A stretch of DNA of 64,000 nt from Trichosphaerium sp. ATCC 40318 (Eukaryota > Protista > Tubulinea): contig JALMLS010000064.1 in assembly GCA_038496445.1 (NCBI GenBank), forward strand, positions 124,001 to 188,000, read 5' to 3'. Of this stretch, positions 12,530-43,317 are shown one piece after another (the first letter of the stretch is position 1; each line of letters begins with the position of its first letter). A program made the translations under genes and the position numbers. Below the pieces are notes generated by a model. That model did no database searches and was not told where the DNA came from. It worked only from the letters and a program-made list of their open reading frames with translations.

Positions 12530-15500
12530 TTAATCTGGGTGATCTGGAAATAGGGTCATTGGTAGTGTTGTTTTTAGCGTAGTGATGTCCAAAGCATTGA
12601 TGCTCGGTCCTCTAGACACGTGAAGCAATTCAAGACCAGCCAGAGAGTGAGCCAACTTGATTAGAGCAGTTGCTGACACTAGAAAAAAGAGTGAGCGCTA
12701 TCTTCAATCTGGAAGGTGTAACGTACCCTTGGTACATGCTGCTAAGTTCAAGATTTGCAAATTAGTACACTTTTCAAGGTAGGTGAGACTCGTGTCTGTA
12801 ATGTGCTGACATCCACCAAATGTCAAGGCTTCGAGCGTATCTTCACGGTTTTGTACAAGCAGTTGTACTGTATTGTCATTTACAGAACAACCAGAAAGAC
12901 CAACCTTGGACAACAGTTTGCAATGTGTTACGATAGAGTTTATGCACTCCATATCTACACGGTCGCATCCTTCCATTTGGAGTTCCCTATTGTTCAATTA
13001 GAGTTAGACAATCACCAAAAGAAACAAAAAGTTATGTCGCCAGCACGTACTGTAATCGCTTCAATTTGGTGAGATGTGTCATAGATTCGCCTGTAATGAT
13101 GGAACAGAAGCCTAGATCTAATCGCTCCAAGTACAAGCAAGCTTGTAGTACGGGTTTAACGCCCTTGTCAGTGAGTCCACCAATACCCCTTTATCAATAG
13201 CGTTAGTTGAGGTGTATTAAACATATCTTGTTGCACCTTATAAATAGCGTAGTGAGGTATGGACAATACTTGGCAATTTGGATGAGGCCATTGTCTGTCA
13301 GTTGTGGTTGTAGTGATCTATTGCCCTTTATCGACAACACTTTCAGATTAGATGTTGCTTTTTCGACAATAGCAGAGATGGTATCATCCTTGATACCGCA
13401 GCAGTAGTCGACTACGAGCGATTCCAGGTTATTACAAGCGTGTCGTGCTTTTGTCTATTGAATGCAATGAGAACGTATAAAACAAGGGTGTAGTCAAGAA
13501 AGTGGCGTACAAGGTTAGTCAATGACGTGCAAAACGTAATGTCCAGCTTTTTGAGTCGCATCTTCTTTTCTCGTAGCAATTGCATTGTATTTTCGTTTGT
13601 CAAGTTGTAGCAATAGCTCAAGGATAGTTCTTGTAGATTTACCGCAATCTTAGCAAGCCCTTTGATGGAGCTCTTGTTGTTCACCGCCGAACACCGAGAT
13701 AGATCCAGTGTGTCAAGGCGAGGCAATCTATTGAGAGCCTTGAGTACCTTTTCAGTTGCATTCTTGCACTCTGACAAATCCAATGTCCTCAAGTGTTGGC
13801 AGCTCTGTACGACTTGAATTAAGTGATCCTCTTCCATGTTTTTCCATGGAGAAAACTTGATGAGACTGTGCATTGTCTAGGCACCAAAGTTAGGCACAAC
13901 AAATAACAGCAAAAGAAAAAACCGTTGTGTGAGTAAAATCGAGGTTACCTTGACTGCGTTTACAGAATTGTATGTGAGCTGATTGCACCCAACGAGATTG
14001 AGCGCTGTTAGATTTGGTAGAGCAGATGACATGTTTTGAATTGCCGTGTCAGTAATACCACCACAGTTGTTCAAGTTGAGGTGGCACAAGTTAGTGTACG
14101 CGCTGCACAGCTTGCCAATGACGTCGTTATTGACCATGTTGCAATGATCAAAGTTAATACGTGGTAGCGATGAATAATCCAATTTACGGGAGCTATCCTT
14201 TCTGCTAACAGCCAGTGTAGAGGCGATATTGCGCACTGAAATGGCACTGAGCTTAACGTCACGATCTGGTTGGAACTCCTTTTCGCGTAGAAACGATCTA
14301 TCGAGCGCCATTGGGAGCATAGCGTTAAGCAACGGGCTATGATTCACAACACGGAACAGAGAAGCGAGGCTGGCACGGTGGTTTTGAACACCTTCTTTGA
14401 ATAGGTCATACCTACTCTCATACAGCGGTCCCCACAATGTTGGCGTGTGTGGATTAACCTTTATCGCGTTGAATCCACGCAAATCCATGGATTGTATAAC
14501 AATTGAACCGCCCTTTGGAGGCACCATTTCTAAGTCGGTTTAGATTGCATAGTTTTAGACAAAGTCATTTTTTGGAGTATCATTCAAACTACTTACTGAT
14601 CACAACGTATGACCCAAGTGGTGGCGATGCAACTGGGAACTCGTGGCCATACCTAGTACACGTGTAATTAAAATATATTCTGGTCGGTCAAACTGGTTAT
14701 GAACGTACTTGCTAGGCTCTAAGTTTTTGAAATTGACATCTAAAGCCACTTTGCCGTCCTCGATAGCCTTGCGCTTGCTGGCATCAGAGAAGTCTTCAAT
14801 TGAAGGTTCCTCTAAACAGATATGTAAGAACAAATTGAAAAGAGGTGACAATAAGTACCTTTGCAGACTGTTATGAGTAACTTGCCGCTTCGCTTCTTTC
14901 CATTATTGGGGAAACGTAGGTACACCGTTGTTAGCCTAATCAAACTTTGAGCTACAAGTTATAGTTGATGGCGTACCGAAATGTACCAGAAGCGTAATGC
15001 AGGATCATATTGGTGACATGCTTCGTTGCATAGTACTTTTGGTCGTGCCTACGAACGTATTTCGTCAGATTTTGCGGTATCTCTTATCGAAGGAAAAAAA
15101 AAGCCATACCTCAAAAGGTTAATTGTTACGTTACCAGGCATCTCCTTGATTTCGTCTGTCTAATTGACTGTAAGAATTTGCCATCAATGATAGGGAGGTT
15201 TAAAAATGACATACCTTCAATATAGTAAACCAAAGACGGTGCGGTCTTGATGCATCAGGCAAGTCGCTGCGTTTAACCAGTTGCTTCTTTGCAATGTCAT
15301 AAACGTCAACAGTGTAATTAATGAACTTTTGATCCTCTGATTCCGTCAATGGTGGAGGCTCAAGCTTTCTAGAACCCCGCATGAAACGGTGTCTACGAGG
15401 TGATAGTTAGTAAACGCACTCGGGTGAATTGGCTGTTTAATTATATTATACCCAGACAGTAACCTTTTGCTTTTTTTGCCCTTCCTTTCACTTTTCGTGA

Positions 15501-18500
15501 GCTCTTGTGCATCAGCGTTGGACTCACTCGACGTGAACAATTTAGGATCATCCAAGGAGCCAGTGCTATCGTTGGCTTTTGCCAAAACATACATATAGTC
15601 GCCGTCTGCGAGAACCGGATTAAGACGCAGCATTGCCTCGAAAAGCTGTCCTGCGCCCATGTACAGATTCTCAGCATCGACTTGATCGTCCGAGATACGC
15701 GCCCACATTTGTAGTATATCACCAGCTTGATAGTAGAGGCGATGTGTCCTAAAACAAACAAATAAGAAACAGTAGAACCAACCAATCGCGTGCGCACCGT
15801 GCGTGGTAGCATAGAGCAATTTTGTGCAGTTGGAATGCTTTACGTAGCACTGTTATTGTATCTGCAATATATTCGCTCTCTTTCTTGGCTCGTTTATAAA
15901 TAGTTGGATTAATGCCAAAATCCCTCAATTGCTCAGAAATATTGGTTTTTGCAAGCCACAACCGAACACTTTCGAGTTTGGCGTACTCCTGTACACCAAC
16001 GTTAGAATGAGGTAGGAAAACCCAAATAAAGCCAAAAAGCAAACACGTGCCTTATTGGCCTTTTTTAATATTCGCGTTTTATACGACTTGTTGCAGAGCA
16101 TTGCTTGGTGGTAGAATTCGTAAGCCTTTGAAAAGTACTCCTCCTGCTTTTCCCACGATGAATCCAAAGCGCCCAAGTTTACACAGGCCTATTCCAAACA
16201 TTACGTACATGAAAATGTAAAATGAGGGGTAAACACATACCATAGCTCTAGTTGCATAACCCTTGTGATGATCTGGGTCCAGATCGCAGCAGCTTCTAAA
16301 CTTATCCTCAGCAGCGCGGAGCAAGTCCTTTTTCCTGTTCACATCTGTTCGGGATTGTTTGTAGAGACAGTAACCCCATTGAAACATAGTGTCTGCGTCG
16401 TGAGTAGATGACGCAACCTTTGGTTGTGTTATTTGTAACTACTACATATCATCCCGGATTATTGTACGTACGGCTGCTTTGAACTTTTCATTGGCGAGAT
16501 CCCATAATCTAGATCCTTGACCCTTATCTCCTGACACTGCTTGCAAGTACAAAGCCTTGGCTTCTGCCTCGTCAACGATATTTAAATGTCTAACAATCTC
16601 TCGCATCCCTGCGATATCTGCCTTGTACAGTTTGACTCTGTTCGGGTTCTGCCTTATCGCTTCTTGCGCTGTCTCCGTCAACACGACACCGGTGAGACGT
16701 TGGAGTCTCTTGAAGAACTCAGTGACTTTGATAGCACTATTTAAATGATATGTTGGACGCTATCGCCAGGAATGTTAGTTTGCAAAACATGTTGAAATAT
16801 TAAAAATTTGTGAAGCACACATACTTGCTCTCGTTGTGTCAGTGTGTTCATGAATTGTTTCTTTATCTTTCGCTTGATTGTATGTGACCACCATATATCA
16901 GAGGACGTCTGTGTTAGCAGAAAGTCCCTTGACTCTAGTACGGCTTTGGCTTGTTCGTAACTCATTTTTCTATTTGCACTTTAGGACGCTGCTTGTTGAG
17001 GAAAAGGAGTTATTGCACAACGTACTCTTTGCTTTTTAGGGCAATTAATTGAGCTTGATTCATTTCGGACAGTTGTTTACCGTCTATTTCATGCCTAGAT
17101 AAAATATCACAGGCTTCTTTGGGGACACCAGAGCTTGATAAATACCTTGGATGTTTGGTTAAAACAAAAAAGTATCTCAACTGATGCCAACTTACTTTAT
17201 GAGCTCCCTTGATCGCCATTTCTTAAGTACGGTTCCACTACCGTTACAAAGTAATCTATTAAAAAAATCTACAGTAACGCGAATGTATGGCTCGGTAGAT
17301 GGCATCTTAACTTTCTTCATTTCTAGCCGCAACAATCGTCTGTAAAAAAAATAAGTGCACAAATTCCCTTTTTGATTACTACGTTACCTCAATTCGTTCT
17401 TGCAGACCCTTGCAACGATCTACAGCACCGAGTTAACAATACACCTTTAAAGTATTAATGGCGTACTTCATTTAGAATGTATTGCTTCTTTCTTGAGTTG
17501 CCAACAATTAAACTGCGAATATGTCCCAAGTGCCGCGTGTTAATCTAATAACGCCAAATGAGGCTTGGTTGAATGACAGTAAACGTACGCCATCGCGATG
17601 AAGTTGGGCGGTTAAACTGAAAGTAGGCTCGTTCAGTACGGTTGGTGGCGTTTTACTGAATCGTTCAACAAAAGCAGGAATAACTACTTTGTACAAACGC
17701 GCAGTTGCCTCCCGTATTTCGGCATTATCAGATCTTTTATCACGTGACCATCCCGTGTAGGCATCACTACTCAACGGACAGTATTTGGCACTCGCTCTGT
17801 TGGATTAAGTGACAGTGTTAGCAGTTAACTACAACCAAAAGAATACATTACCTAACGAACTCTGGTCGCAACAGCTTGTAGTACATACAACGTTCATATT
17901 TGTCATATTTGGGTGGCAGCGCCTCAGGAGGGAATACTCTCGCAAAATCAACGACACTAAAATACAATAAATGAGATGACACGCAAAATCTAAAGGGGTG
18001 AAGAGTACGTACTAGTACTTGTTGTCTGTGCCTTGATGCCCTTCGATATCTCCAGGCAAATGAACAAAAGTCTCTAAATTACATGTGAGGGGACAGAGGT
18101 AACAGGTAACGAATGAAAAAGGTACCTGAAGCGCCAGCACGATGGCCTTTGAGATTGAGGACTTTAGCTACATCTTCCATCATGTCATTTAATTCATCTA
18201 TGTCCGCATGCACCATCATTCCTCCATCACAACTGCCATATCTATACGCATGTTAGTTACTGGTATGGAACATGTTCTATCAACTGCAATGAATTATAAC
18301 TATGCACACCTGATTGTGTATTTGTTGATTGGCAAAATGCTCAGCGCAATGAGCCTATATCCAAGATAGTCGATGAGCGCCATGAGTGGGTAATACAAGC
18401 CCGGTACTTTGCTATTGTACATACCAATGAGGCCCTCTAAAAAAAAGTCATAAGCCCCGGTGTCACACATTATGAAAAGTACGCACTCAAGTCGTGGCCT

Positions 18501-19609
18501 GCAGCTTTAGCAGCCAAGCGATCAGAGCTCGAACCTTGACCACCATACATATACATATTCAAGTCCTCGTCAATGAGTTGATCGACAGCAAATTTAAATA
18601 AAATGTCTTGAACAATAAACTTTTCGCCTGGTTACTCTTTTGTTAATACCTAAAACACCAAGCTATGAATCTTACCTCCAGCCATGCCACCTATAGATAC
18701 TGGTTCAATAGTTTTTTTATCTAATGGCATGTGACACTCAGAAATGATAATTTTACCATACGTCTAACAAAATGGCGTCAATCACACTTTTAAAACTGTT
18801 TCTTAATATCAATACCGTAGCAGCAAACACAAAGTCAGACGCAATGCTCGACAATCTCTCATATTTGCGGAAGCTTAGAGAGGTAAGTTAGCGTTCTGTA
18901 CACACGATGCATTGACCCAAAGATGACATACCCTTCAGGCTCGTCTAATATACATTGAAAGCGCTTGGACCAGCCCAATGGAGATCCTATGGTCGTTTCA
19001 ATACAAACTACCCTGAGATTGTATGTTACCTTTCTTTCGTGCAGACTTGTTGTTTCTGTAAGACCTTGCGCCTGCGTCTGATCCTGAGTTATCGTCTAAC
19101 TCTTCTTGCCCTGATACTGTATCTGATCCTGCGCTCGATCCCGCCTCAGACGCGGCGAGCAGGTATGCGTCAGGCTGTGCATCGTCTCCCCCAGCGCTTG
19201 CTTCTTCGCTATCCGACGCCGATTCTGTTTGTAAACCGTATGCATTTGTTTCTTGCACGTCATCCTCTGAACCAGATTCAGACACAGACGCGACGTCTGC
19301 GTAAGCGTTAAATTGGGCAGTTTCCTCTGCGTCATCAAATTCGTCGCTATCTGATACTACAGGAACTGTGTAGGCGGAATACGCGGGAGCTGAGTCCTGT
19401 TGGGGTTTTTTTGTATTTTTTGCGCTTTGTTTCGCTTGTTTAAATTGTGGAACCTTTGGTGGTGGTCTACTTGGTTTAGCAGCTCTTTTTTTTTGTGACT
19501 TGGGTAGTCGAGGTGCTGGTCGGGTTGGTGCGACGTCATCTATGTCCTCTAGACAGCTGTCGCTACTATCCTCAGCACTCTCGGCATCAAGGTACGCATT
19601 ATAGCTCAT
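12530..19609 (-). CDS. Large CLU-domain protein 1: acidic N-terminus - CLU - SAM - TPR-like - Cys-containing LRRs (multi-exon)
   Basis: CLU motifs ILFKFAVD, AAKAAGHDL, YYPLMALIDYLGYRLIALSILPI, PGDIEGHQGTDNKY and VDFARVFPPE. SAM-like LSRHEIDGKQLSEMNQAQLIAL. TPR-like FQWGYCLY...AAEDKF. Many F-box/AMN1-type LRRs (LNLNNCGGITD, LDLSECKNAT). Confidence 0.85.
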
Positions 19610-19872
19610 CGACTATAACACGGGTTTTTAACTGCCCTGATTGTTGCCAATTACCCTTACAACTCGATTGGTAATTTGTTAAACGGCCAAAAACTGCGAT
19701 TTATTCAAAGTTTATGACTAGCGTAAAAAGTCAAGCTATTTATTAATACTAGTGAATAACGCGTTATTTATCGTTGACAAAACACAAAGTGCCTTCTACA
19801 GTGATACAAACAATACAAAAAAAAATAGTTTACAATAAGTGTAAAACAGGGAAACGTGAAATACACGTGGTC

Positions 19873-22800
19873 TTACACGAAGGTACCATGCTGTCGCATG
19901 TATTCCACATCTAAGAGAATGATCACTGTTTTGTTGCAATTAAGAGAATAAGTGTACCTTCTTGTGCGCGGACAAGCGATTTTCGATAGTTAAAATTGGG
20001 CGTGCGGCTAGGTATAGAATTTTTGTCTTGCACGTTGTACGTGTTAAATCCCATAAGTGAGTTGCCTTGGCTTATTTCCTGCACGTAATTGCTAGGTACG
20101 TAGCCAGTTCGTCCATTGAGGTAACCAATGAACCAAACATCATCCTTATTGATGATGTAAATAATCTCACCAGCTTTAAAACTCAAATCTCCTTCATTCA
20201 TTGCTTGGTAATTATGAATTGCACGTGCTTTAGACACGACCTTAGCACGTTTCATGGTAGTCTAAATTGCTATTTTAGCCACGAAAATGTAAAGTATTGC
20301 AGTAGGTAAGAAATAGCGTACTCCTTTTTGTGCTAAGCTGAGCTTGCGACTATCAAGCTGACCCTCAATGTTACCAAGTTGTTGATACTTATCACGCAAG
20401 GAGGTAATCTTTCTTTGTAACTCCCTGTTTTGAGCGTGCATTTCATCACGTTTTCTGGTCTCAGATATGCGTCCACGTTCTTGGTAAGCCGCCAATTGAT
20501 TCTCCATCGCACGGCGGGCTTGCCTTAGTTGTTTTACTTCTGAAGAAACGAGGCCCAGTTGAGACTTTAGTCCCTTTAATTTATGTTCGAGTTGGTCTTT
20601 TTGCTTGTTGAGCCTCCCTGCTTGCTGTTGTAAAGCAGCATGTCGTTCCAACTGTGCACGCTTGCGAACAAGATATATTGACCGTGCTAAAAATCGTCTG
20701 CACACTAAAGGGTTTTTTTAGTGAATGTAAAGAATTGCTGAGGTCGTACATGATTGCATAAAAGTAGCAGAACGTATCATCTGGCCGGCATAACCTGCGT
20801 ACCAATTACGCACGTCCCATCCCCTAATGCGGTCTTTAATACAAATGTGGGCATGATTTGAATTACCTTATGTAGGCTTGTATTGTAGTAGCATATTCCC
20901 CTAGCCTCCTGTTTCTACGATCTACCAATATTTGTAAGTATGTTACTGATGACCCTTATGATTTGTGCTCACCTTCTAATTTTGCAAGTATACCGGCCTT
21001 CATAAATAACTTTGTAGTACCGAACTGAACATTGTTCGTGTCCACCTCTGGCAAGTGAGCCAAAAGTTTTTGAACAGCTGGCTTGGGATTACGAATAGCG
21101 AATATCTTGCGAAAGAAGACACAATAGCGATTCCAAAACTCTTGGTATGTCCTATGCGTTGGAAATCCTTTTTTCGCAATTTCGACACCCTGCAATATAC
21201 CAGAGTACCGTAATTGTTCCAACACCTTGTGCTTGTTAAATTGTGCTGCTTGTTTGGTTTCGTTAGGTTTTATGCATCGTATGTAATGAGACGAGGTTTG
21301 AGCTATTTCATTGATCAAATTTGTGAGAGAAACCTAAACATGGTGAGAAAGTAGCATCCCTCCAAATGCTACTAAACCTTAAACTGAGCGCCAACAGAAA
21401 CGAATTTACGTTTTGAACGGCTTTGTCCTTCATCTGCAAACAGAGTTCCAGATACAAAGGCATTGTTACTGCGCGCCATTGCGTCTAAATGCTCTGGAAT
21501 AATGAAATCTTTGTTCTTCTCTAGAAATCCAGCCTAATGAAATCATTATTTGGCATATTATAGCAAGACAACATGGTGGACAAGGTCACGTACAGCATCA
21601 TAAATAATGGTACCAGCATAGTGCTTGATACCAAACGATGTTTTAGATATCTTAGGCCTCTCGAAAAAGGGGTTACGACCAACGTGCTGGTATAGTTTTG
21701 AACAAAGAGATTCATCACTGCCCTTTGGGAATTTGCACTCTTCGTCTAAAAGCTTCAAAATAGACAAGCCAGATTCTATCATATCCAAAACGCCTTGATT
21801 ATCTTTGTACTCAATATAAGTCCAAGGCACCGCTTCTCTCTGGTACTCAACTTGTTCTTTTTTAAAAATATTCTGCAAAACCACTAATTAGCAATTGGAC
21901 ACAAAATAATAATAAACTGCGGACCTGGTTGAATTGATGTTGTAACTTTTCATTTGCGTAGTTAATGCAAAACTGCTCAAAACTGTTCTTGGCAAAGCAC
22001 TCAAATCCATATATATCAAGAACACCAATTGACCTCCTACAATGCACACTTGCATCTAGCGACATGTTCATGCGCGTCACCAACCAATCAAATATGCGCG
22101 AATATAACGTCATAGCCAAAGAATCACGAGCACCTTCCGCCTGTGATACAGTCAACCCAATCTTGTACGTTGAATTACGATTGCCAGCTGCCATTTGTTT
22201 GGTAGTCAGAGTTGTTTCCATGAGTTCTTCACTTATTCCAAGGAGATCACAGAAAATGTTTAGTGGGTTGTACCCACCTTTATAATGCTCTATCTGCGCG
22301 GCTTCGCCATTGGCGCCAAACCTCACGTTACCCAAGTGGAGAATCGCAGCAAGCACGTTGAACAACTCATTTTGTTCCTCGTGGTTTATGCCCACCAATG
22401 CCAAAGCACGTATTGTAGCGCGAAATTGTGCAGCGTCATCAACTCCTAGGCACAACAGTCAACACACACTATGAACAAAGATTTTTTTGTAGCAAGTCCA
22501 AATAATACTCACCATCGACCACAATACAACCACTCTGAGATAGATAATAAAAGGCCTCAGCTTTAGGAACTTTCCAGGCGCGCCTTTGGGAATTGTCTGC
22601 ACCAGCACATAACTGATAGAAAATATGATAGTTCCGCTCAGATTGCGCTTGCCTGACAAGCCTAATTTTTTCCAACAGGTAAGTTTGGAGCCTTGCGCCA
22701 ACAATGCGCCCTTGTGTATCAAATTGAACTTTCATATATTTACCAAAACGACTGCTATTGTTATTTCTAATATTTGTGTGAGTACAAGGACATGTCACTT

Positions 22801-23713
22801 TTTCAAGCGTCAAAAAAAAATTTAACCTTGTAGTCTTCGCGTTACCAAATGCTTCGAGGACAGGCGTGGTACCTAGGACGCCTTCTTCAATGCCTCTACT
22901 ATTTCCTTGTGTAGATGGACTCATAGCAGCCAGATATTTTAGAATTTGCTAATACGTACAGTTATAAAGTGTTGAGGTGATGCAATTTGTTTCGCGTGCA
23001 AAGAAAAAATTACCTTGGATGTCTAACACAGCATTAATATTTAATATGAAACAATCAATCATTTGTACCTCTGTCTTACCAGCTCCCGACTCCCCAGATA
23101 CGAGTATAGATTGATCTCCAAAATGATTCATTTGTGTGTAAGCCTGTTCCACAATGCCAAAGACATGAGGAGGTAATCCTTCGCGAGCGTTATTAGCATA
23201 TTTTGCAATGTGTTCGCGTGAGTAAATAGGCAATTGTTTGTATGGGTTGACAGCCACCAGAGTCGGGCCACTGTATGTGTATATTTCATCAGCCTCATAG
23301 CGTAAGGAAAGCGTTTGCAAAATTCCCGGCTCGTGCTTTCTTTCGGTCAGTGACAATTAACCTAGGTTACTAATTGCAGAAACGTACCAGCAAAGACATT
23401 TGAGTCAAGTCTGCGATGCCTAAAAAGTAAAACGTTATTACCAGCGAATCATCATGCGCGTAAAAAGTATGTCGTACCATCTGTTATTTTGGGGTTTCGT
23501 TTCCAGTACTTGCCAGAGCGAACCGTACGCTCCTGTAAAAGCAATGTTAAACGTATTGATTTTCACTTTTATGTGTACTTCACCAGTAGCCAATTCTTTG
23601 GCAGTTATTTGGTTTCCTTGAGCTCGTACCACGGTTGCTTCGACGAATACCTCTGTTTTTGGTAAGTTTAATCTTAAACATGCAATACCATACCTTGGCG
23701 ATCCTCTATCCAT
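19873..23713 (-). CDS. Unconventional myosin heavy chain: motor - IQ - coiled coil - SH3 (multi-exon)
   Basis: IYTYSGPTLVAVNPY, GESGAGKT, LEAFGNAKT, NNNSSRFGK, DIYGFE, NSFEQFCINYANEKLQ and HYIRCIKPN. IQ motif IQAYIRG. SH3 ARAIHNYQAMNEGDLSFKAGEII...WFIG...GYVPSNYV. Confidence 0.95.
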
Positions 23714-23966
23714 ACTGTATCGCCAGAGCTTACAGCAACAGCCATTATCGTAAAATACTAATTGCACAAATTCCAACACTGCTCTACAACTTCCCTGCTG
23801 TTCTCACAAGTATAGCTTTGAGCCATCCATACAACCGGAGTACTAAACAGCCTGCAAAGTAGGCACGGAGCGTAATTAGGATTTGACAGTAAAAGTCAAC
23901 AACTGAACAGCTTTGTGCTCGAATTTCTTGTTTAATTCTTTAACGCGCCAAACAAATCACGTAAAC

Positions 23967-25489: not shown

Positions 25490-25722
25490 TTTTGAGTTTA
25501 ATGTAATATAAACGCTTTTGCTGTCTCCTCTGATTACTGTTATATTACTGTTATGAATTTCATTAAAAGTTGTTGTCGCGTGTATCTGTGGGTCATTTAA
25601 GATCGTTCGCACCAGGTCTAGTTAAGTAGCATTTTTTTTGCTTAAAGTGCTGCCATTCGTGTTTATTTGGGTATTGTTAACTGTAACTGCGAAAAGCAAG
25701 GTGATTGCGCAATATTTGAACC

Positions 25723-28899: not shown

Positions 28900-31800
28900 A
28901 TGAGGGCTATGACGTGGGGTAGTAACGAAAGCGGTTGTCTTGCATTAGGACGACTGTCCACTGATGACGAGGCGGTACAGTGGTCTCCACAACCAGCGCA
29001 AGTCGATAAGGTCGTACTTGTTGCCGCGGGTGCTCATAATACCTGTTTTGTCACAGGTACGCACGCTAAACGCTGCAAAGTGCTGTTGTAAATGATTGCA
29101 AAGCCTAATGCAGAAAATAGAAAAAAATCAGGCTTTGGTGAGTGGCACGGTGTACAGCGGCAAAAGGAAGAATTCCTCGCTGTGTGGTAAACAAGATGGC
29201 GAAAATGGAGTGGTAACAGCAGGTACTGCAACAAATTACAACAACCCATGTTAAACGTCATAAAGGAAAGCCAGTACCAATACCATTTACATTTCCGTCA
29301 AGAGTGAAACAAATAGCACTTGGAAACTATCACGCAGCTGCTCTAACAAGTGCGATTTTGCTAGTTTATTATTAGTTTTATTAAACACAGATGTTAGGTA
29401 AGGGTAACGTTTTCACATGGGGCTGGAATGGCAATGGACAATTAGGTATGTACCTGTTTAGTTGCACAGCTAAAACGTTGACGTAGGACATGGAGATAAT
29501 ATTAACGCCAATCTTCCAAAGTTAGTACAAATCAAATGCGTACAATACATTGCATGTGGTACAAAATATACAATGGCATTGACAGATTTTGGTGAAATTT
29601 ATGGATGGGGTTCTAATGATACAGGTACAAACGACTCTTTGTTCTCTTTTATTTTCAGTGGCTTCAATGTTTTGACATTTGTGTGATTGTGTTCAAATAT
29701 TGGTTTTAGGTACACTTGGTATTGGTAGTACAGACTCCAAAAACGCCCCTACTAAGGTAAAAATGATAAGCAATGTAACTGCTATTGCTTGCGGCACATT
29801 TCACACCGCAGCTGTTGGTACGTAGTTAAAATCCTTCATACATTTTACTCATCACATTTTGTATCTTAGAGGGTAATGATAAGTTCTACATGTGGGGTAG
29901 TCTCGCCAATGGCAAAATCGAGCCTCGACCAGTCCTTGTAAGGTCGCTATCTGATATAAATGTAACTGAAATTGCCTGTGGAGAATGGCATACGCTTTGC
30001 AGAACGCTCGGTGGTACTGTATACGAGTGGCGTACAAAACAAGAGCCGAGACAAGTAGATGCTTTACGTGGTGTTTCCATTCGCCGTGTTGTTGCTGGCG
30101 TACGCTTATTGCAGTTATTTGAATTAGTGCCAACAACCATAACACATTGTAGGCCCACCACTCTGTAGCTGTTTCTGACGAAGGCAAAATTTACACGTGG
30201 GGCCGTAACACCTCCGGTCAGTTGGGCAGGTAGTCACACTAGTCACACAAACGCGCACTTCTTTGACACTAAGTAGGAAAACGCCAAAGGATGATGATAA
30301 AGCGTATTCGAGCACACCTAGATCTATACCTCCTCTTGAGATTGAGGCAATCGATCAAATCGCTGCTGGTGACTACCACAGTGCAATTTTAGCCAGTACG
30401 TAGTGTTGATAAGGCAATGTAAGTAGCATCCCCTAATGTCTGGCAGCAAAGTCGAAGCGTCGTCAAACGATATGGAAGCTCGTTCAACATGAACGCGCAT
30501 ACTTTCAGAAGCTTACTATAGTTGTCAAGGTACACTGGAAATATTTGTGGATTCCGCATGCCTCACATAGTGTTTTATAGCATTACATGAAAGTCTTGGA
30601 AAAATTTGTAGGCGCTAGCACCACACCCTCCCTGCGTGAATCTTCTGGTGGTATCAAGTCCTCTAACAAGCTACGGCAACTTGCCAAATTCCAGACAGCA
30701 ATATTTCAGAGTCCTAAGAACATTGTACGCAGTGAAGCAACCCTTATGTCTGAAGCAGATGTACTCACCTTATATTAGATACCTACCATCTTTTCCAATA
30801 TAAAAAAGATATACTTGATTCACAGAGAGTTCTTGGCACACATGGATAGGTTGATTTCAAGGGATTGGGATCAATCTGAGGAAGTTGGCCAAGTTCTTAG
30901 AAGCATTGTATGCTTGTTTTTTTATATCCTTGCTGCGTTGATTGTTAACCTCGTTTCTCTTTAGATGCCACGATTTAGGGCGTACCTTCAATTTGCTGAT
31001 GATTACAACAATGCAGCTATGACATTGACTACCTTGACACGAGATCAAATACAACTTCAAGGCATACTAAAGACTGAGAAAGATAGAATTGAGAACACAT
31101 ACCAAAACATTACAGCAGATAAGAGGAAGATAAACTTTGAGTTGAAAGAGTTGTTAATTGAACCAATCAAACAAATTGCACGATACATTACATCTATTGG
31201 AAAGCTCAGAGATGAGACCAGCAAGAAGCATCCTGATTACGACAATGTAGTGTGGTGTTTGGCACGATTCGAGGGTAAGTTATACTGTTTTCCTTCCGTT
31301 TTATGACCAAGGCTGCTAGGTATTTTGGAGCGTATTTGCAAGAACTTCGAAATGGAGAACCCTATGGAAATTCTAAGTTGCACCCTCAATGAATTTGGTC
31401 ATCCACAAATAGGCGGTGGTAACGTCAGTCTCCTGATAGAGCGTCTCACACATCATAAATTTATCGGTAAGAGCAATTGATTTTTCTCATTGCACTCAAA
31501 TGTTATTGTATCACCTGTTCATGAATTATTGCAGATATCGACTTTGAACACGATTTCTTCTTAACATACAAGAAGTTTACGGAGCCAAAGGTGGTATTGG
31601 ATTGTTTGATAAAACGATTCAATGTATCGCCAAGCAATGAGGTCATAGACAAACAACACTGGATAAAGACCGCACAAAGACCTATACAGCATCGTGTTGT
31701 AAATATAATCAGAAATTGGGTTCGTCACCCAAGTTCGAGTCATGACTGGAAGGACAAGTCAAAAAAATACTACAAACAACTTTGCAAATTTCTCGACAAG

Positions 31801-32865: not shown

Positions 32866-33076
32866 TTAACAATAAATTGAATAAAATAAAATTTTTGTGG
32901 ATGTATGTAAATGATTGAAGGGCTTGTGATGCTTTCCTTAACCTTAAATATTGAGGTACAGCGTAGTTGTTATTTGTTGCCGTGACCCACAACATTGAGA
33001 AATGGCAACGAAACAAGTCAACATTTTTATCTAACATTTTAACTTAAAAAGCACCAGTACAAACTCACACCTGCGT

Positions 33077-35414
33077 ATGCAAAAGAGAGGTCGTAAACAA
33101 CGTACTGTTGGTTCTAGTGAGACCATTAAACGGGCTTGTTTAAAGTGCCGTTCACGGCACGTCAAATGCGACGGTATGGTCCCTTGCGCACGCTGTAAAC
33201 GCAATAGTTTATCGTGCGTGTACGCTTCGCCTAAAAAACGGGGACCAAAGCAAGGTACGAGGTTTTTTACGTTATTTTCGGTACAACAACGGTATTTACC
33301 ATGCTCCTCAAGGTCTGAAAACTCGAAGGACTACAGCATTACAACAAGCGAAATTCCAGTTAGCTGTAAAACATATAGAAGCGGAACATTGGCGCAAAAT
33401 GTACGAGCGTATAGCGAGAAACCAGGCATGCACGTGACTTTTGTATTGAACATATTTTTCTAACGCTGAACTCATAATAGACCACCCTTTGGGCGTTATC
33501 AGCGCATTTGGATTTATCAGCAAACATTGCAACATGGCTTAAGCTTTATCAGCTCAATTATTTTCCTTGCTATGTACGCCCAATGGCACTAAAAACGTAT
33601 AAGATCCTCAATCGTTCCTGACGCGTGTCTTAGGGCATTCCGACTAGACAATGGGACGCACAAAATATTATAAGCACATTCAAAACAGCCACCAGTACGC
33701 TCCTGAAGCATATGAGACTTGGTTCTGACTGCTTGTCTTAGCTTGGGGAGTAGATCCAAATCTGTTAGAGATCACTGCCATTTTGGCATTTGGAGCGCGG
33801 TGTGCAGGGTCTAACGAGCCGGCAACGCATTTCAACTCACTGTGTAAAAGAATGCAAGCCAACTTGGGCACTTTACGTCATCCATATGTAGCGGGTATGA
33901 ACAATGTGGTACACAGCACCCAACAATACTCATATTTTATTACAGGCGGATTAATACTACTCGGCGATTATGGTCTCATCATGGGTGACATGGAATCTAG
34001 TTACACTACTATATGTCAAGGTGTTGGTACGTTGTGCACACTTACTATAGTTGATAAGAGTGATTCTGTTGATAGACATGATGAAGACATTGAAGCAAGA
34101 AATGCAGAATCATCAAAAATGTTTGGATTACTTGGTGACGCTGTGTAACACCTGTAGGGTCTTCACACCACGTATAAGAATGAATAGGTAAGGCACCGTG
34201 ATTTGTGGTTATTGTGAGCGATGGTGTTCTTAATGTGATTTAAATTAGATCAGAAGTGTTACAGGAGGTTACTGTACATCCTGATTTGCCCAAAATGGAC
34301 GTGACAGAGTTTGTAGATGTTAAAAACTCAGAAACACTCAAGGAGAGGCAGATGCAAGTACTCTGGTGTATCATTGGAAAAGTATGTACTTCTAGTCAGT
34401 ATTTGTATTGAGTATCACCTAGTTATGGCTTAGCGTTTCCCGACCTGCAGTTATCAATGGCAAACCCTGTTTTCATCTCTTCATTCAGAAACATGTACCA
34501 TCTCGTTTTTCTTTTGTTGTTGTTCTAAGGCGGCTAATGCTTATGTTAGTCTGGTGATGATTATTACCAATTTTTGAAAAACACAGCAACATTGAACATG
34601 TCTAGCGTGTCCTTTTCGCAGTCGGTGAAAAGAGGGTGGTTGGTAGCTGCTGACTTGTTCACAACATTCTCGTGTTTTTCAAAAAACGCGGTTAATATTG
34701 ATAGAGCGTTACAAGCACGTGCCTTAACTCATTAACACCAGAAAGCGATAGTACTAACAGAAGCTAGCACGCCAAAAGTGCTTTTAAAAAGTTTATTGAA
34801 GCAGAACACAACGAAGATGATTGCCCTGGAGCTATTTGCAGTATGTATGACATGTGCCTCATAGCCATACGATCTAAGGACACGGCCTTGTTTCATGAAG
34901 TACATATTTTTGAGCCCATGGAATTTGTGGTTTTTATCGTTTCTGACTACTGGATTTAGAGTTTTTCTCACTTCTATGAGCATTATGTAACCGAAAATGG
35001 TAGGGGAAAGTTTTACTTGAGGCACGTGGCGTTTTCGTTTACCGCTCAGAAATCCTAACATTGATAGGTCCCTTGCCTTTTTTGCTGATACAGCCGGCAT
35101 GGTGTATGATAAATCATTAATACAAGGATTTATTGACAAATGTCCTGATATGCCAGCTTTAAAAAGGTACACTTGTTTGTTACACAGGTTACTCACACCA
35201 AATTCGTAGTTTGCCTGAACAGGCGAATCCAGAAATACATACTATGCAAGGTGGTGAAGAACTTGACCAATTCAATCCTTTGACACCATTCTCCTTGCCC
35301 GAAGATGCGAAGGACGAAATGGCTTGGCTAGCAAGTCCCAATCACCTCACTTCTGAACTTAGCGATGACTTGTTTGCTGTGGATGTATCATTCTTTGACA
35401 GTGTGTTGTTTTGA
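33077..35414 (+). CDS. Zn(II)2Cys6 binuclear-cluster transcription factor (multi-exon)
   Basis: ACLKCRSRHVKCDGMVPCARCKRNSLSCVY then KKRGPK and a coiled coil. Acidic/hydrophobic C-terminal activation-like tail. Confidence 0.9.
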
Positions 35415-35463
35415 TAAACCCACAAAATAAACAAAGAGCTGTTCTTTTGTAATTACATTTATT

Positions 35464-38400
35464 TTACATGATGACCAAAAAAGGCTGGTAAGAACGCTCC
35501 AGGTAGCATCGCTTCAATATCCGCTGCTACAGATATGTTTTTACACTTTGAGATATTCAAATGCTCAAGCGAACTGCAACATTTAACGAGTCCTAAGACA
35601 CCAGCATCTGTCACTACAAGGCAATAGTTAGAAAAAACCTAAAAAGTGTAATGTACCATTTGGGTTGCCTCGAATGTTGAGCACACGCAATTGTGTTGAG
35701 TGCAGTCGTAACGCCTTATTGATATTAGTATTGTTGATTGTTGTTACTGGCAAGTCGTACGTCAAGCGAGACATTGGTGATTTCATCACAACCTCCAAGC
35801 AACAATGCACGCAGCATTGGATGATGGAAAGCGAGAAGATGGACAGTATCATCGGTTATACCACAACCGGCCAAATTGAGCTCTGTCAGTTTCGGACAAT
35901 CGACAGCAAGATCATTTATTGATGTTCCCGTTATATTAGGCATACACCCTTCCAACCTAACGATGACTCTTTAGTAAAAAAACTCCCAAAAATAAGTATC
36001 CAACGTACGCTAGCATTTCTAGTTTCTTGCAACTTCTGAGCTTGGCGATAGACTTGTCTGTCAGTAAACAACAGTACGATAAGTCCATGACACGCAAGGA
36101 TCGCGAGCAATGCCATGCGAGCTGTTCAATAGCGTGGTCCGTTATATCAGTACATCTAAAGAAAGGTGTCAACATAGGTGTCTGGGTTTAGTTTGTTGTT
36201 TTGTACCTGAAGAGGCGTATCACTTGGATTGTTGAATACGCGCCAGAATCAAACATGATGTTGTCCATTCTTCGTGGAACTACTGATTCTCTTGTATCCC
36301 TCATATTGGTAGACTTTGATTTTGTACTCAGTATGCTCTTAGGAGTACGCATTTTCTTCTTCTTGGTATCTACCATACTCGCTGTTTCTGGAGGCGATTC
36401 GTCTGCTGGTTTCAATTGAGCCATTGCTTTAGCAAAGTTCACCAGAGATTGATCAGTCACGTTAACTTTAACATGTCTATCACAGCTATAGTTGAAGGTT
36501 TTGTCAGTTCAGAAGTTCAAAAAGAAAAATTTTGAACAATGGAGGTGAGGCGTTTGGTTTTATTTGCCAACGTACTTGATAGATATTTCAACTATACGCA
36601 GATGTGAGTTGGATACAGCATTGATCACTGGGTCACCAAGTTGGCAACAAAAATCGAGATTCAGTCTTTTAAGATTTCGTGCTTTGGCTATTACCGGTAT
36701 AACCTGCCAAATAAGTGTAAGTGTACAGTCGTCTTAATACCAAAAGTATGTTGACGTACACCATTGTCTGTAAAGTTGCATTCCTCGATAGAGAGATATT
36801 CAAGGTTGCTTGCGTTCCTAGGAAGCGATTGTATAGCTGTATCATCCAGCTGGGTACATCTAATAAACCAGTAAGCAACACTGATTACAAGTTAAAGAGT
36901 TTTACCCTCTCAAGCATAAGCTACTCAGGTGTGGCAAGCCTTTGAGCACTTTGTTCAAAGTCTTGGATAATATGGAGGTACAATTGCTCAGATCAAGCTT
37001 TTTCAAGTTTACAGCCCTAGCAAGGGTAGCTGCTGCCTTGTCTGATATCGTTGACCATAACGTCAACCCCCGAACCGGGAATTTTGTGAAATGAAGTATA
37101 GCAGTATCAGTAAGGTGGTCGCAATCTGACAAGTTCAATACACGAGGGCCTGTTGCTATCACTTTTGCTTTTCTGCCCACAATGCTACTATTGCTACCCG
37201 CACTTAAGTGCGTAATAGCTGCGTCGGTTATACCGGTGCACCCAGTGAGATCTACATTAAGTAAGTTTCCTTTACTGTAACCATGTATTTCTTACCGAGG
37301 GATTCTAGCCTCTTGCATTTATCTGTAAGAGCAATTATAGCTGCATCTGTGATACGTGTACATCCGGTGAGGATAAGGCTTTCTATGCGCTTTGCGTAGT
37401 AAAAGTTGGACCAAATAGCTTCCAATACTTCATTAGTGCATTGTAATGCACAATCTTTAAATGACAACGTATTTGCTGCCAGTGTTTGGTTCTGTGGAGG
37501 TGGGTTTGATTTCAAGACTGTACTATGACTTGCGTTATCGTCTGGGAAGTCTATAGGAGGTTGTGAACCATCACGAGATCTATAGGACAACAAATTAATT
37601 ACAAATCATTTGTGCGTTTAAAAGAAACAAAAAATGATTAACGCACGTGTTGGATGACGCAACAAGCGATTGGTAAATAAATACTTGAAGAATAGCATTT
37701 AATAACGGGCTGTTGTTCGTCGCACGAACTAAGATTGCCAATTTTTTGCCTTGGTCTTGCAGTACGTTGTATGCAAATGTTTTGTTTGTGTATGATGACA
37801 TGCGCTCGCGCAAGTCCACTGTTTTAGTATCGAGGGACTGAAACTCTATTCGAGAGTTTAACAAAAATGACTACCGCATACAAAAAAAATATTGACATGC
37901 CTGTTTGGCGACCACGCAATACAATGCGCTCTATTGTGAGGAAAGGTGCCTTGATATCCTCTGGTGTATGTGGCAGCAATTTGATGAGTAGGTATTTGTG
38001 ATTTACATTATATACATGGGTCTCTAGTTCGTTGCTACCAGGTTGGAGGTTGCAGGTATCGATCGCAGCAATCTACAATTATTAGTGTCATGTTTTTTGA
38101 GTTTGTTAAAACTGCAAACACAGGACTAAAATCCGTACTGGGTCTGGTTCATTTCTGACTTCGGAGTGAATAAGTTGATCTACAATATCACTCGGGTATT
38201 TGTTAAGACAGAATTTGTATTTGGCTTTCTCTTCGACTTCTTTCTTGTCTATCAAATATTTAGCGAATTGCATATCACCATGTATTTAGCATACCGTTTA
38301 AACCAAACATAAATATTCTGCCACTGCCTGCTTTTCTATTTTTTGGGCGTTAGTTCAAAGAAAGTATCAAGCAGTAGATAGCGTACTCCTTAGGGAATGT

Positions 38401-41400
38401 AACAGTGACACGTGTCAACTGAAATGGAGCTGGGTACTCAACAAGTATATCTACTACATCACGTGCTTTGTATACTTGATGGTTTGACTGGAACATGCAG
38501 ACAGGAATGTTGCTATTGTCTTTTTCTCTTGGCGCTTGTACTATTGTTGGAATAATTGGACCATCTAAAATCAATAGCTTTTAGCATACACACCACTTGG
38601 TTTGAACGATGTACCTTGGTCTAACCCTAATACCATCGCAATATTATGTTTAAATTTTATTTCGCCTACACTGCCTTTAGAGTCTCGCAAAGAAATTTCA
38701 AAAAAGAACATACCATTTGTGGTATCATAAATTTTAATAGTATCTTGTCTTTCAGTATCATCTCTTGTGAGTCTTCTCGATCTGGGCTGTACTGAGTGCG
38801 TTCCTTCTTTTTCTTTGGTGTCTTTAATGGTTTTGTGAGACACTTTAGATGAGTATCGGCGAGCTAAGACAGACGATGAGTATCGACGTACTAAGATAAA
38901 CGTGTATAAGCCGTATGTTACAAAAAAAAACTTTACCCAAACTTTTCTTATCCTTCGACTTCTTAGTCAACGTATGACTTTCCGTCTCCATTGTGATTGC
39001 TGTTTCCAGTTTTACGGCATTGGCTGGTGCTCCACCTTTATGAACAACGTATATGTATTTTCCATCTGATACTATAGGGCATAGACGAAGACTCTGCTCT
39101 AGCCATTGTGACGCCTCAATAATACGGTCTTCATGACCATCGAGGCGTGCCCATAACATCAATACGCTGCCCAACATGTAGCATGCTTCACTGGTTCTTT
39201 GGAAGCCTATAACTACCTTTAACATTTGCTGCGCAGTGTTGAGCATCAGATTTAATCTTTGAGTATTCAGCGGTTTCTCTTTGGACTAATGTAAAAAGTT
39301 GAGACTACCAATATTTTAGATAGGGTATACCTCAAGCATGGCTCTAACTCTATCCGATATGAGTCGTGCTTTTGTCAATAAATCATTCCTAAGAGCTCAT
39401 TAATCGAAACTGTATAGTCTTTAGAAAACAATATAGTACACATAATCCGGCTTGTGCTCGAATGCTTTCTCGTATTTTGTGGCTGCCTGAAATCGAAAAT
39501 AAGTAAACAAAAACAAACCAAAAAAAAAATTACAACATACCTCAGAGAACTTTCCAACTTGAGCCTGGTACTCTTCCTTTCGAATACCAAGGTCAATAAG
39601 TACGTTTCCCCATTCGAACCACGCCTGGTGAAATCCTGCGTGGAGGTGCACGGCAGACTATGGTCAAAATAGGTAAGTAATAAATCGGGCATAGAAACGT
39701 TACCTTAAACTTTTCTGCAGCACTTTCCAATAGTTTTAAGCCTTCTCCAGGCTTCGATGAGCGTTTTCCTTGCTCTAAAAGCAGCATACCCCACAAATAT
39801 ATTGTTTGTTCAGACTGTGTGCGTGCTGCTACAGCCTTGGTGAACTTGTCGTTTACCAATTGCCACAATCTATCCGCCTACAGCGACAAGTCAACAAAAA
39901 AAGAATTACTACAGCTTTGAGATTGACACGCACTTGTGCACCACTAGCATTTTTGAATTTGTAAAATAGTGCTTTAGCTTCGGCCTCGTCAATAAGTCCA
40001 AGATGCTTAACTTTGGCTTTAATTTCCACTATATCCGCGTCTAGCAATCTACACCAATACCATTAGCACTTACTCGCTTCTTAAGGTTGTTGTTACGTAC
40101 CGAATACTGTGAGGATGTATTTTAAGCTCAACCATCATTTGCTCGCTAAGGCGTACACCTGAGAGCTCTTGTATACGTGTGAACAATAGTAAAAAGTCAT
40201 CTGGAAGCCATCCACTCTTGTACAGAGCGTAAGAAAAACAACACATTATTTAGTGGTACCATACCTGCAACCTGCCTTCCTCGGATCGTTCCTTCTTTGT
40301 TAGTGCAACTGTTCCAAACTTGGCTTGTATTTGTAGTTTGACAGTACGCTTCCAAAATATCTCAGAACGCTGGCCATTTCGGCCCAGGATAAGATTCAAG
40401 AAATCAACAATAACACTCCTGGCTGTGGTTTAGACTGTATTCACACTAGCGAGAATTTGTACCTGTATGGTTCTTCAGATGGTATTCTTATGGATCTCAT
40501 TTTTCGTCTTAGCAGCCTGTTCAGCCTGTTTTTTACCACTCTACTTATCAATTCAATTAAAAGCAACCTCCGTAGACCACCTGGAGCTACAGAATCACGT
40601 ATAAAACCAAGGTGACGAATATTAATCTAACACAAAGTCAACATCACTTTTGCAACTGTTTTTTTTGATAAAATGACGTACCCCCTCTCGATGCATTTCC
40701 TCAGTTAATCTGAACTGAGAACTATCCAATAGATGGTAGATTGGCATATTTGCTAACTTGGCAGCGAATCTAGGAACGATAACCTCAAGAAGGAACCGTG
40801 AAGCATTTTCCACTTCCTTTTCATCTTGCTTCTTGTGATCACCCATACACCAAGGCGTAAAAGCATCACTGTTGAGTTGTATTCCATAACGCCTTTATAA
40901 GAGTGAGTAATGAAAAAAGATGCTTTGTGTTTTTACAACGTACCTCACTAACTCAGGACGCAACTTATTGAAATAAACACGCCTATCATCAACTTTGACA
41001 TCACGCAATACAGCCTCAGGTGGAAATACCCTGGCAAAATCGAGAACGTAGTATCTACCGTCTGTGCCCAAGTGACCTTCAATGTCTCCTGGTCCAGCTA
41101 TCGACTTGCCTCGCAAAAGGTGGGGTTTGATCAACAACTGCCTTGCTGCTATTTCCATCTTTTCATTTAGTTCAGGTATATCAGCGTGTACAGTTCTAAT
41201 CATGATAAGTCAGTGTATTCTTTTTAAGAAATATGTAACAACAAAAACAAACCTTCCACCATCACTACTTCCGTATCTTAGCGTGTCACCTCGTACAGGT
41301 ACAATAGACATGGCCACCAACCTGTAGCCTCTGTAATCGATGAGTGCCATCAATGGATAGTGAAGTTCTGGGACTGTAGTGTTGTAGTAACTCATCAAAG

Positions 41401-43317
41401 ATTCTGTTAAATGGTGAGGTTAGTATCAATGTATTAAATAACCAAATTGTTTTAATGCGCGCTTACTTAGATCATGACCAGCTGCTTTAGCAGCATTCCT
41501 ATCAGATTTGTGAAAGCCACCGTACATCCAGAATTCGTTCTCGGTGAACCCTTTGTCTTGGAGATTTACATCGACCGCAAACTTAAACATGATGTTTTGG
41601 ACGACATATTTTTCACCTCCAGCCATACCACCGAGTACTTTAGGTTTTATTGTTTTTTGTTCGTCAGGTAAGTAACGTTCAGATATCACAATACGACCAT
41701 ACGTTTGTGCGGCGTACACAAAATCATGGGCCAAGTTTGACAATTTCGAAAACTTCTCGACACTTTCGGGCATTGATAAAATACGTTGAAACTCTAAACA
41801 CAATTTTAAAAACCATCTTTTGAATGACTTGATGTTGCGCTTTTGTAATAAAAAACAAAAGAGAGCTCGTACCTTTGTTCCAGTCTTTTGCCATCGCCGC
41901 GGCGTTGCCAGCTCCTGGACTCCTTAGCATGTCATCTGCATCCTCCTCTTCCGATGAATGGCTCTCCGCACTATCAGATTCATAATAATCACTATCAGAG
42001 TCGCTAGAGCTTGAGTCTGTATCGCCTGAACTGTCTGGTATTGCTTCTGGCGAGTAAAAAGTGGGTGTTGAGCCATTTGACGGACGGGGAGGGTCTTCTG
42101 GCTCAAAATCTGCAGGTTCAAGAGGTCCATGAGCATACATTGGTTGACGCGGCTGAGACGAAGAGCTATCATCAGTGTCCTCGTCACTATCGGTGTCAGC
42201 ATCCGTATCGGAGTCGCTTGATTCATCAGACGAGCTGTCATCAAAACCTAAAGGCGCTTGTGCGTAGAGTACTTGTGTTTTTGAAGTATTCTGCCGCGCT
42301 GGTATGCGAGTGTCGACATCATTGCGAGGACTTTTTGTATAACGTTGCCGTTCAATATTGGAGTGTGGTGGTGTGGATTTAGGTGGTGAGCGTTCAGTAC
42401 CGGAATTCTGGGGACGTGGAGAATATGGAAGAACGCGTGAGCTGCTGCGTCTTACTCTTGCTGGTAAGTCTACAACGGAATCTCCAACAAATGTAGATTT
42501 GATAGGGGATTCTCCACGCATAGGTCGCAATACAGATATAATGCGCTTCCCTGGCTCTTTTGTGGAAGTTAGTAAACTAATGACAGCATAAAATGATGAC
42601 CGTACCAGGTGACAATTTTGACGAAATCTCTGGGGACGACTTGGACTTTAACAGAAATGTTAGCATCATCACACTACTACGCCTTTCAAAAAAACATACC
42701 ATTCTGCGATTAATGTAAAGTTTCTGCTTGGGTAACTCTACGGTTTGTTCTTTCACTAGTTTGGTGCTCTTTGGGTGTTGTCTACCGACGTATAGCGAGT
42801 GTCCAGTTGTTGCAGGAAGTGTCACTTTTGACGGCTTCCTTCGTTTCTCTCGCGGCACGAATGGCTCCTAGAGGAGTTGGCTTTTGGTAGTATATATGAC
42901 GTCGTACAGGTGATGGTTCGCGTTTTGTAGCGAATTGTTTTTGGCTTACTACTTTCGTTGTTTGTGGGTGCGTTGAGGGTACGCTTGGGGAGTTTATGGC
43001 ACTTCCACTAGCCTTAAAAGCCTTATGAGCTCCGATTGCTTTGTATGATAGCTTCCGTGGCTTGTTTTGCACGAACCTAGGTGGGTATTAGCGAAAAACG
43101 GTTTTTGCTTTCTATTACTTCGTTTTAATTGGCGAATTGAGCGTATTACGCCTTGGTGAGTCCGGTCTATAAACAAACGATGATTGAGGACTACGTGACG
43201 AGCGGGCAGTAGAAGCTACATGAGTTACAATGCTATATCGCCACGGTGTTAATTAAATAACGTACTGACACGTCTTTGTGGAGAGGTTGTGTGAGGATGT
43301 TCACAATGTTTTTCCAT
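35464..43317 (-). CDS. Large CLU-domain protein 2: S/P/D-rich N-terminus - CLU - TPR-like - Cys-containing LRRs (multi-exon), paralog of 12530..19609
   Basis: IMFKFAVD, AAKAAGHDL, LHYPLMALIDYRGYRLVAMSIVPV and PGDIEGHLGTDGRYYVLDFARVFPPE. TPR-like YLWGMLLLEQG and AWFEWGNVLIDLG. LRRs LILTGCTRITD, LNLAGCGITD. ATG at 43317 inferred by splicing. Confidence 0.85.

Follow-up and report, generated by a model that had tools for sequence, protein, structure and literature searches.

Two long CLU-LRR genes of Trichosphaerium sp. ATCC 40318 and their place in the amoebozoan Cld family

What is the role of very long proteins that carry a CLU domain near one end and an array of leucine-rich repeats (LRRs) at the other, and are such proteins new? 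The question is raised by two genes, here called gene A and gene B, in a 64,000-nucleotide stretch of the genome of Trichosphaerium sp. ATCC 40318 (assembly GCA_038496445.1, contig JALMLS010000064.1, positions 124,001 to 188,000 of the forward strand), hereafter the window. An earlier note, made from the letters alone, had proposed that they form an undescribed family of intracellular sensors. We find that both proteins are laid out, in order, as a disordered tail with tyrosine motifs, a CLU domain, a helical central region, tetratricopeptide repeat (TPR)-like helices, a private region of about 270 amino acids and about 17 LRRs of the type found in F-box/LRR (FBXL) proteins. Judged by homology, they are further members of a known, barely studied amoebozoan family, the Cld proteins, and belong to its CLU-LRR branch. 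The reading that we favour, with a probability of roughly 55%, is that they are cytosolic signalling scaffolds combining a kinase-fold CLU module, an FBXL-type LRR solenoid and a tail whose tyrosines would recruit SH2 proteins. In such a scaffold, the LRR solenoid would hold a specific protein partner. The CLU module, with its predicted kinase-like fold, Gly-rich loop, strand-3-like lysine, D-x-E-G-H and D-F-A-R, would bind a nucleotide and may catalyse a reaction. The tail motifs, when phosphorylated, would recruit SH2 proteins in the way that the Dictyostelium proteins CldA and CldB are bound to LrrB.

Gene models and shared layout

The window is intron-rich eukaryotic DNA of about 41% G+C. 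RNA evidence for gene A came from the public run X1 (guessed to be RNA), which carries 23% of the words of gene A, with contigs of X3 added. Contigs of X1/X3 confirmed 15 introns of gene A between 13.9 and 18.7 kb; their joints have CT..AC ends, which is GT..AG on the minus strand, and they therefore represent spliced RNA from the same or a very close strain. Both genes were modelled by dynamic programming with splice-site weights taken from these 15 introns. In gene A, a single open frame begins at the ATG at 19609, passes through all 15 confirmed and 16 predicted introns and ends with the TAA at 12530; two of the predicted introns were corrected with the help of homology and contig coverage, giving 32 exons and 1761 amino acids, and two loose contig ends agree with two further predicted introns. 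The RNA strain and the assembly differ in gene A at 15 sites scattered from the CLU domain to the first LRRs (13 synonymous third-position changes, one nonsynonymous and one intronic). Because 13 of the 14 coding differences are synonymous, they provide an independent check of the frame and indicate purifying selection. Gene A is real, expressed and under constraint.

The gene B model is collinear with that of gene A, and its 5' end is uncertain: open models also start from other ATGs, including 43221, 42702 and 42521, the start at 43317 and the first ~200 residues are prediction only, and the first four exons are without support. Its stop codon occupies 35459-35461, which displaces the end at 35464 given at first, while the limits of gene A (12530-19609) stood. 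Domain scans were run exon by exon on stop-to-stop segments of both loci (40 scanned exon segments) and were combined with comparisons to 287 collected family proteins, in which P-numbers denote collected proteins or cluster representatives. The resulting features are as follows.

12530..19609, minus strand: gene A, 32 exons, about 1761 amino acids, ATG at 19609 to TAA at 12530-12532; open frame with 15 RNA-confirmed and 16 predicted GT-AG introns
18940..19609, minus strand: gene A N-terminal acidic, Ser-rich disordered tail with six [N/D/P/S]-A-Y motifs, taken from the model; no Pfam family
17796..18939, minus strand: gene A CLU domain (predicted kinase-like fold, from the CLU of a relative), seven exons; PF13236 on exons, 57% identity to gene B
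16484..17795, minus strand: gene A helical central region (CLU-central/eIF3_p135-like), by BLAST to the PF12807 regions of relatives; contains HLNIVDEAEAKALY at 16547-16588
15598..16483, minus strand: gene A TPR-like helical repeats, by homology to P0002 residues 1000-1108 (TOM20_plant match), with MLRLNPVLADGDYMYV (15586-15633) at the end
14183..15328, minus strand: gene A private middle region, about 270 amino acids (residues 1046-1318), containing RVVNHSPLLNAML at 14315-14353; introns RNA-confirmed
12533..14182, minus strand: gene A array of about 17 Cys-containing (FBXL-type) LRRs; LRR_4, LRR_6 and related families, repeat list, FBXL2 at E 3.8e-17
35459..43317, minus strand: gene B, about 33 predicted exons, about 2003 amino acids; splice-site model trained on gene A introns
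40871..41758, minus strand: gene B CLU domain; PF13236 on three exons
39016..40870, minus strand: gene B central helical and TPR-like region, with motifs at 39964-40005 and 39046-39093; no Pfam match
37468..38753, minus strand: gene B private middle region (residues 1205-1475), 23% identical to that of gene A and containing RATNNSPLLNAIL at 37688-37726
35462..37410, minus strand: gene B array of about 17 Cys-type LRRs; LRR_6 at 27.3 bits (over the cut-off), repeat list, FBXL2 at E 2.8e-7

The CLU domain (PF13236, Pfam gathering cut-off 24 bits) is matched by gene B exons at 66.9, 50.8 and 56.5 bits, together covering profile positions 5-223 of 225, and by gene A exons at 36.1, 28.1 and 21.5 bits. 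At the other end, LRR_4, LRR_6 and FBXL-type LRR families match 3' exons of both genes, and the ~17 repeats listed in each fall within the 15-20 Cys-containing LRRs estimated from the letters. The parts in between are recognized through relatives. No exon of either gene reaches the Pfam threshold for PF12807 (CLU-central/eIF3_p135), and the region aligns at E 1e-13 to 1e-34 to relatives that match this family. TPR is likewise without a direct Pfam match in the exons of both genes; the assignment of a TPR region, already made by the earlier note, comes from homology to relatives whose corresponding stretch matches TOM20_plant or TPR_17. The N-terminal exons match no Pfam family, CLU_N and GSKIP-type parts included. 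An acidic disordered N-terminus had been ascribed to both proteins and describes the tail of gene A, but in gene B the first ~200 residues are basic and the acidic part comes after them.

The two genes stand on the same strand, 16 kb apart. A tblastx comparison gave 20 collinear matches from the CLU domain to the last LRRs, and BLASTP of the spliced models gave a single match of A175-1742 to B409-1995 (28.5% identity, E 4e-157); with the same domain order in both, the claim that the paralogs share their whole architecture holds from end to end. Identity is 57% in the CLU domain, 37-40% in the central region, 30% in the TPR-like repeats, 23% in the middle region and 31% in the LRRs. In a rough FastTree of the CLU and central regions, which placed both models among 143 database proteins and 41 other loci of this genome, genes A and B are sisters (support 84). 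The pair is an old local duplication within the lineage.

Six motifs, quoted from the start as private to the pair, are in frame on the minus strand and form three couples (16547-16588/39964-40005, 15586-15633/39046-39093 and 14315-14353/37688-37726), none of which was found in the 287 family proteins. Other CLU paralogs contain weaker relatives of the exon with the first motif, and therefore only the motif itself is private there, which narrows the original claim. The private middle region of gene A has no Pfam match; profile and single-sequence searches found no homolog of it in the 287 family proteins, and a genome search returned the query alone.

An obvious concern with models of this length is that they wrongly fuse a CLU gene with a separate downstream LRR gene, and no single RNA contig does cover both halves. 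However, the frame of gene A stays open across 15 confirmed introns with no stop or start needed, a spliced exon chain crosses the junction region at 13.9-15.6 kb, the collinear layout recurs in gene B, and relatives are known at full length, including as single transcripts. We consider a fusion artefact extremely improbable. The check on spliced models that the earlier note had called for revealed no separate CLU and LRR genes, and each of genes A and B is most likely one intron-rich gene.

Four details of the models can be added. A ~90-amino-acid insert in the central region of gene A (16846-17221, minus strand), with none in gene B, is weakly SAM-like (SAM_2, E 0.0014, 19.2 bits, under the cut-off). 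A basic, Lys/Ser/Thr-rich insert of ~70 amino acids (36236-36448, minus strand) breaks the LRR array of gene B. The gene A model requires a 13-nucleotide micro-exon (18932-18944, minus strand), which has good splice sites on both sides and lies outside RNA contig coverage. One spliced RNA contig has a loose end at 14905-14934 in which 4 of 30 bases depart from the assembly, far more than in the rest of gene A (~15 differences over 5,951 bases).

Kinship with the amoebozoan Cld proteins

The layout of genes A and B is widespread. A HMMER search of a large protein set, started from a CLU exon of gene B, identified 1755 proteins, many of them 1600-2700 amino acids long, and in local BLAST at least 22 cluster representatives showed similarity to gene A in the CLU part as well as in the LRRs. 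Four proteins (P0117, P0002, P0064 and P0092) show CLU, eIF3_p135, TPR/TOM20-like and LRR matches in Pfam, and two of the four add a villin headpiece. Public protein sets show the CLU-LRR layout in nine or more amoebozoan genera; those named are Tieghemostelium, Polysphondylium, Dictyostelium, Acytostelium, Heterostelium, Cavenderia, Acanthamoeba, Vermamoeba, Mastigamoeba and Pelomyxa. The full set of CLU, eIF3_p135, TPR and Cys-type LRRs is found in dictyostelids, Acanthamoeba, Vermamoeba and Archamoebae, and MMETSP transcriptome entries, one labelled Mayorella, also match. In P0183, a Vermamoeba Trinity transcript, CLU and LRRs lie in a single complete open reading frame. Uncharacterized relatives such as Tieghemostelium KYQ96957.1, Polysphondylium KAF2070452.1, Vermamoeba EP00029_P005506 and Mastigamoeba EP00727_P013397 resemble genes A and B in carrying CLU, eIF3_p135 (eIF3_p135-like in genes A and B), TPR-like repeats and Cys-type LRRs on one chain of 1600-2400 amino acids. 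They differ from them in the stretch from TPR to LRR, which is not alignable with that of genes A and B, and several CLU-LRR relatives end in a villin headpiece or E2 domain, whereas genes A and B have neither. The same CLU module is fused elsewhere to E2, Rab GTPase, RCC1, WD40, family-3 G-protein-coupled receptor (GPCR) or PAS.

The two Dictyostelium proteins studied in 2010 fall in the same family. CldA (DDB_G0278895) and CldB (DDB_G0276091, our P0263) share with genes A and B a Cld-type CLU domain, followed by CLU-central (PF12807) or, in genes A and B, by a CLU-central-like region. CldA was described as Clu plus SH2 plus TPR, and CldB as Clu only, as then seen (PMC2906285). The C-terminus of CldB, however, has Cys-type LRR units at ~1100-1260 and is similar to the LRRs of genes A and B (E ~1e-4), and CldB is therefore a short CLU-LRR protein. 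Another CLU-LRR gene of Dictyostelium is DDB_G0276089, and a member with a villin headpiece is seen in D. purpureum and T. lacteum. Its array, not reported in the 2010 paper (PMC2906285), is short compared with the ~17 repeats of genes A and B. Like them, CldB has a low-complexity N-terminus in which a Tyr motif recurs (RYDN, five times), while CldA, unlike them, has SH2 and TPR in place of LRRs. The private middle region and the three motifs of genes A and B are absent from CldA and CldB.

Within the whole 70-Mb Trichosphaerium genome, 95 PF13236 matches group into ~56 CLU loci, whose best database matches belong to many subfamilies (LRR, LRR plus E2, RCC1, GPCR, TPR). CLU-LRR genes counted among them are A, B, L031 and L043/L044, and others are suggested solely by their best matches; this is a lower bound, with 10-kb flanks for the 16 weaker loci only and the 40 strongest without. 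A single LRR exon run against the genome returned unrelated LRR genes alone and did not recover gene B. The profile and architecture searches and the paralog count proposed in the earlier note thus bear out the architecture and dispose of its novelty: the family is not undescribed, with the layout in so many genera and two members studied in 2010 (PMC2906285), one with a short LRR array, and the pair is not special among ~56 CLU loci. Beyond two papers on LrrB, our literature search turned up none that deals with the CLU-LRR layout or with an expansion of CLU genes in amoebae. The pair is ordinary for its family; the family itself is large, conserved across Amoebozoa and almost unstudied.

Two of the CLU-LRR loci, L043 (G000:C417:14722-24721) and L044 (C136:26236-36235), have the same best matches and repeat spacing on different contigs, and may be haplotigs or a very recent duplication.

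A CLU module with a probable kinase-like fold

In human CLUH, the CLU region is reported to adopt a protein-kinase-like topology that comes closest to HopBF1, with changed catalytic residues (PMC10041065). An AlphaFold model of the CLU region of the relative P0002 (residues 500-865, 54 aligned relatives) reached a predicted local distance difference test score of 94.7. Foldseek matched this model to the Toxoplasma conoid proteins of 9YA0 and then almost only to kinases, with weak E-values. An exhaustive structural aligner placed 9YA0 at Z 17.6 and, over model residues ~26-270, placed kinases at Z 5-6, including OspG (5.9), HopBF1 (5.3), JAK, Bud32, the Rio kinase RIOK3 and ASK1, a range (Z <8) that may reflect only a common arrangement. 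CLU kin aside, only kinases match across the alpha/beta part of the model. These model-based matches appear to agree with the published fold assignment of CLUH and are not independent proof of it. The Toxoplasma proteins CGP (TGME49_240380) and PCR10 (PDB 9YA0 chains EA and JA) have a CLU-like domain as in the family of genes A and B, with 334 residues aligned and sequence matches at E 4e-9 and 3e-6; no other solved structure appears to show such a domain clearly. Both belong to a cytoskeletal ring of apicomplexans, are 2300-5000 amino acids long and are otherwise unrelated in architecture to genes A and B.

Four elements are invariant in 54 diverse sequences, namely GGxAGGxK, the Lys of FKF, D-I-E-G-H, and the Asp and Arg of D-F-A-R. 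The motifs (GGxAGGxK/FKF/DxEGH/DFAR) occur in 70-89% of 193 sequences, and all four are kept in the models of both gene A and gene B. By strand order they would sit at the positions of the kinase Gly-rich loop, the strand-3 lysine, the end of the catalytic loop and DFG. A predicted kinase-like fold with conserved motifs where a kinase active site is expected is consistent with the proposal of the earlier note that the CLU module may be enzymatic. A census of the motifs across the CLU loci of the genome was discarded as unreliable, because introns split the motifs.

The canonical member of the genome offers a direct comparison. CluA, Clu1, Clueless and CLUH share with genes A and B the CLU domain, a helical CLU-central or CLU-central-like region, TPR-like repeats and, by prediction, a kinase-like CLU fold (PMC10041065). 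They have CLU_N and GSKIP-like N-terminal parts and end in TPRs, whereas genes A and B end in an LRR array. The canonical CluA/CLUH gene of this genome (L032:1300-3950, that is G000:C84:49273-51922, plus strand) has a GSKIP-like part, WNPPPGNRRLRGDLFYL; in its CLU domain FFS stands in place of FKF, the Gly-rich loop is absent, and EAKGIRGIDDRIYVMELVR replaces the two Asp motifs (DxEGH and DFAR). The shared core of CLU, CLU-central-like and TPR-like parts would fit genes A and B acting as CluA/CLUH does, binding mRNAs and ribosomes and supporting mitochondria. We think this improbable, as the genome has a separate canonical CluA, neither gene A nor gene B has the CLU_N and GSKIP-type N-terminal parts, and both carry active-site-like motifs that CluA is missing.

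The Cld-type CLU keeps motifs at predicted kinase active-site positions that the CLUH proteins lost. A bolder version of the signalling scaffold, to which we give only limited credence, would make active enzymes of the Cld-type CLU domains, either atypical kinases or other enzymes that use nucleotides, in contrast to canonical CLUH. The CLU-LRR proteins would then form an unrecognized amoebozoan class of LRR-coupled kinase-fold signalling proteins that has grown to dozens of genes in this genome, with genes A and B as a pair specialized by its private middle domain.

Tyrosine tails, repeat type and candidate functions

The tails bring SH2 proteins into consideration. The LRR protein LrrB binds both CldA and CldB through its SH2 domain, an interaction that depends on phosphotyrosine, and cldA- and lrrB- mutants misregulate the same genes (PMC2906285). 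The gene A tail has eight tyrosines, six of them in [N/D/P/S]-A-Y; the gene B tail has Y-A-[Q/H]-x-P-L twice, and the P0002 tail has A-Y-G-[D/G]-L four times. The genome contains 46 SH2 matches, probably ~40 loci. With repeated tyrosine motifs in the tails and many SH2 loci in the genome, it is plausible that SH2 proteins dock on the tails of genes A and B once these are phosphorylated.

One CLU locus of the genome (G000:C178:96835-97170, minus strand) lies head to head with two SH2 matches (C178:99617-100076, plus strand), within 3 kb.

The LRRs could point instead to ubiquitin. The best solved relatives of the arrays are FBXL2 (E 3.8e-17 for gene A and 2.8e-7 for gene B), FBXL17 and SKP2, F-box/LRR proteins with the same Cys-containing LRR type. 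Genes A and B could accordingly be substrate receptors of the ubiquitin pathway, with the FBXL-type LRRs choosing targets and the CLU and TPR parts serving as a platform. Some amoebozoan CLU-LRR relatives are fused to E2 (PF00179: P0213, P0226 and P0239), and ubiquitin co-purified with CldA and CldB, being found in the same gel band (PMC2906285). However, the F-box that F-box/LRR proteins carry was not detected in the exons that precede the LRRs of either gene (none at E <= 0.01), no F-box, E2, RING, HECT or U-box was matched in any scanned exon of the two genes, and no E2 (PF00179) locus adjoins any listed CLU locus in the genome. This function seems possible but rather unlikely.

The original suggestion of an intracellular immune-type receptor, in which the LRRs would sense molecules of pathogens or prey and the CLU domain would signal, is favoured by two observations: the middle and LRR regions are the most diverged between the paralogs (23-31% identity, compared with 57% in the CLU domain), and CLU genes are numerous (~56 loci). 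Yet no NACHT, NB-ARC, TIR, death-fold or other switch domain was found among the 40 exon segments, the LRRs are of the F-box protein type, and the strain differences are almost all synonymous, middle and LRR parts included. The pair is quite unlikely to work as a receptor of this kind.

The signalling scaffold is the reading that best accommodates tail, module and repeats, and several points weigh against it. The Dictyostelium data come from distant paralogs of genes A and B. The similarity to kinases is modest (Z 5-6), and human CLUH is reported to have lost its catalytic residues (PMC10041065). At the level of the models, contigs of 150-350 nucleotides leave gaps in gene A at 15.7-15.9, 16.7-17.5 and 18.9-19.3 kb. 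At that length none bridges the CLU domain to the LRRs, so a single gene A transcript is strongly implied but not shown; the gene B model comes from splice-site prediction. By keeping motifs that the CLUH proteins have lost, genes A and B offer a practical route to the biochemistry of the CLU fold and to how amoebae wire phosphotyrosine-SH2 signalling to target recognition by LRRs.

Other genes lie between genes A and B. A myosin gene (19923-23779, minus strand; Myosin_head up to 183 bits) ends ~300 bp upstream of the start codon of gene A, and a RhoGEF gene (30965-31306, plus strand) and a Zn2Cys6 gene (33077-33463, plus strand) follow towards gene B.

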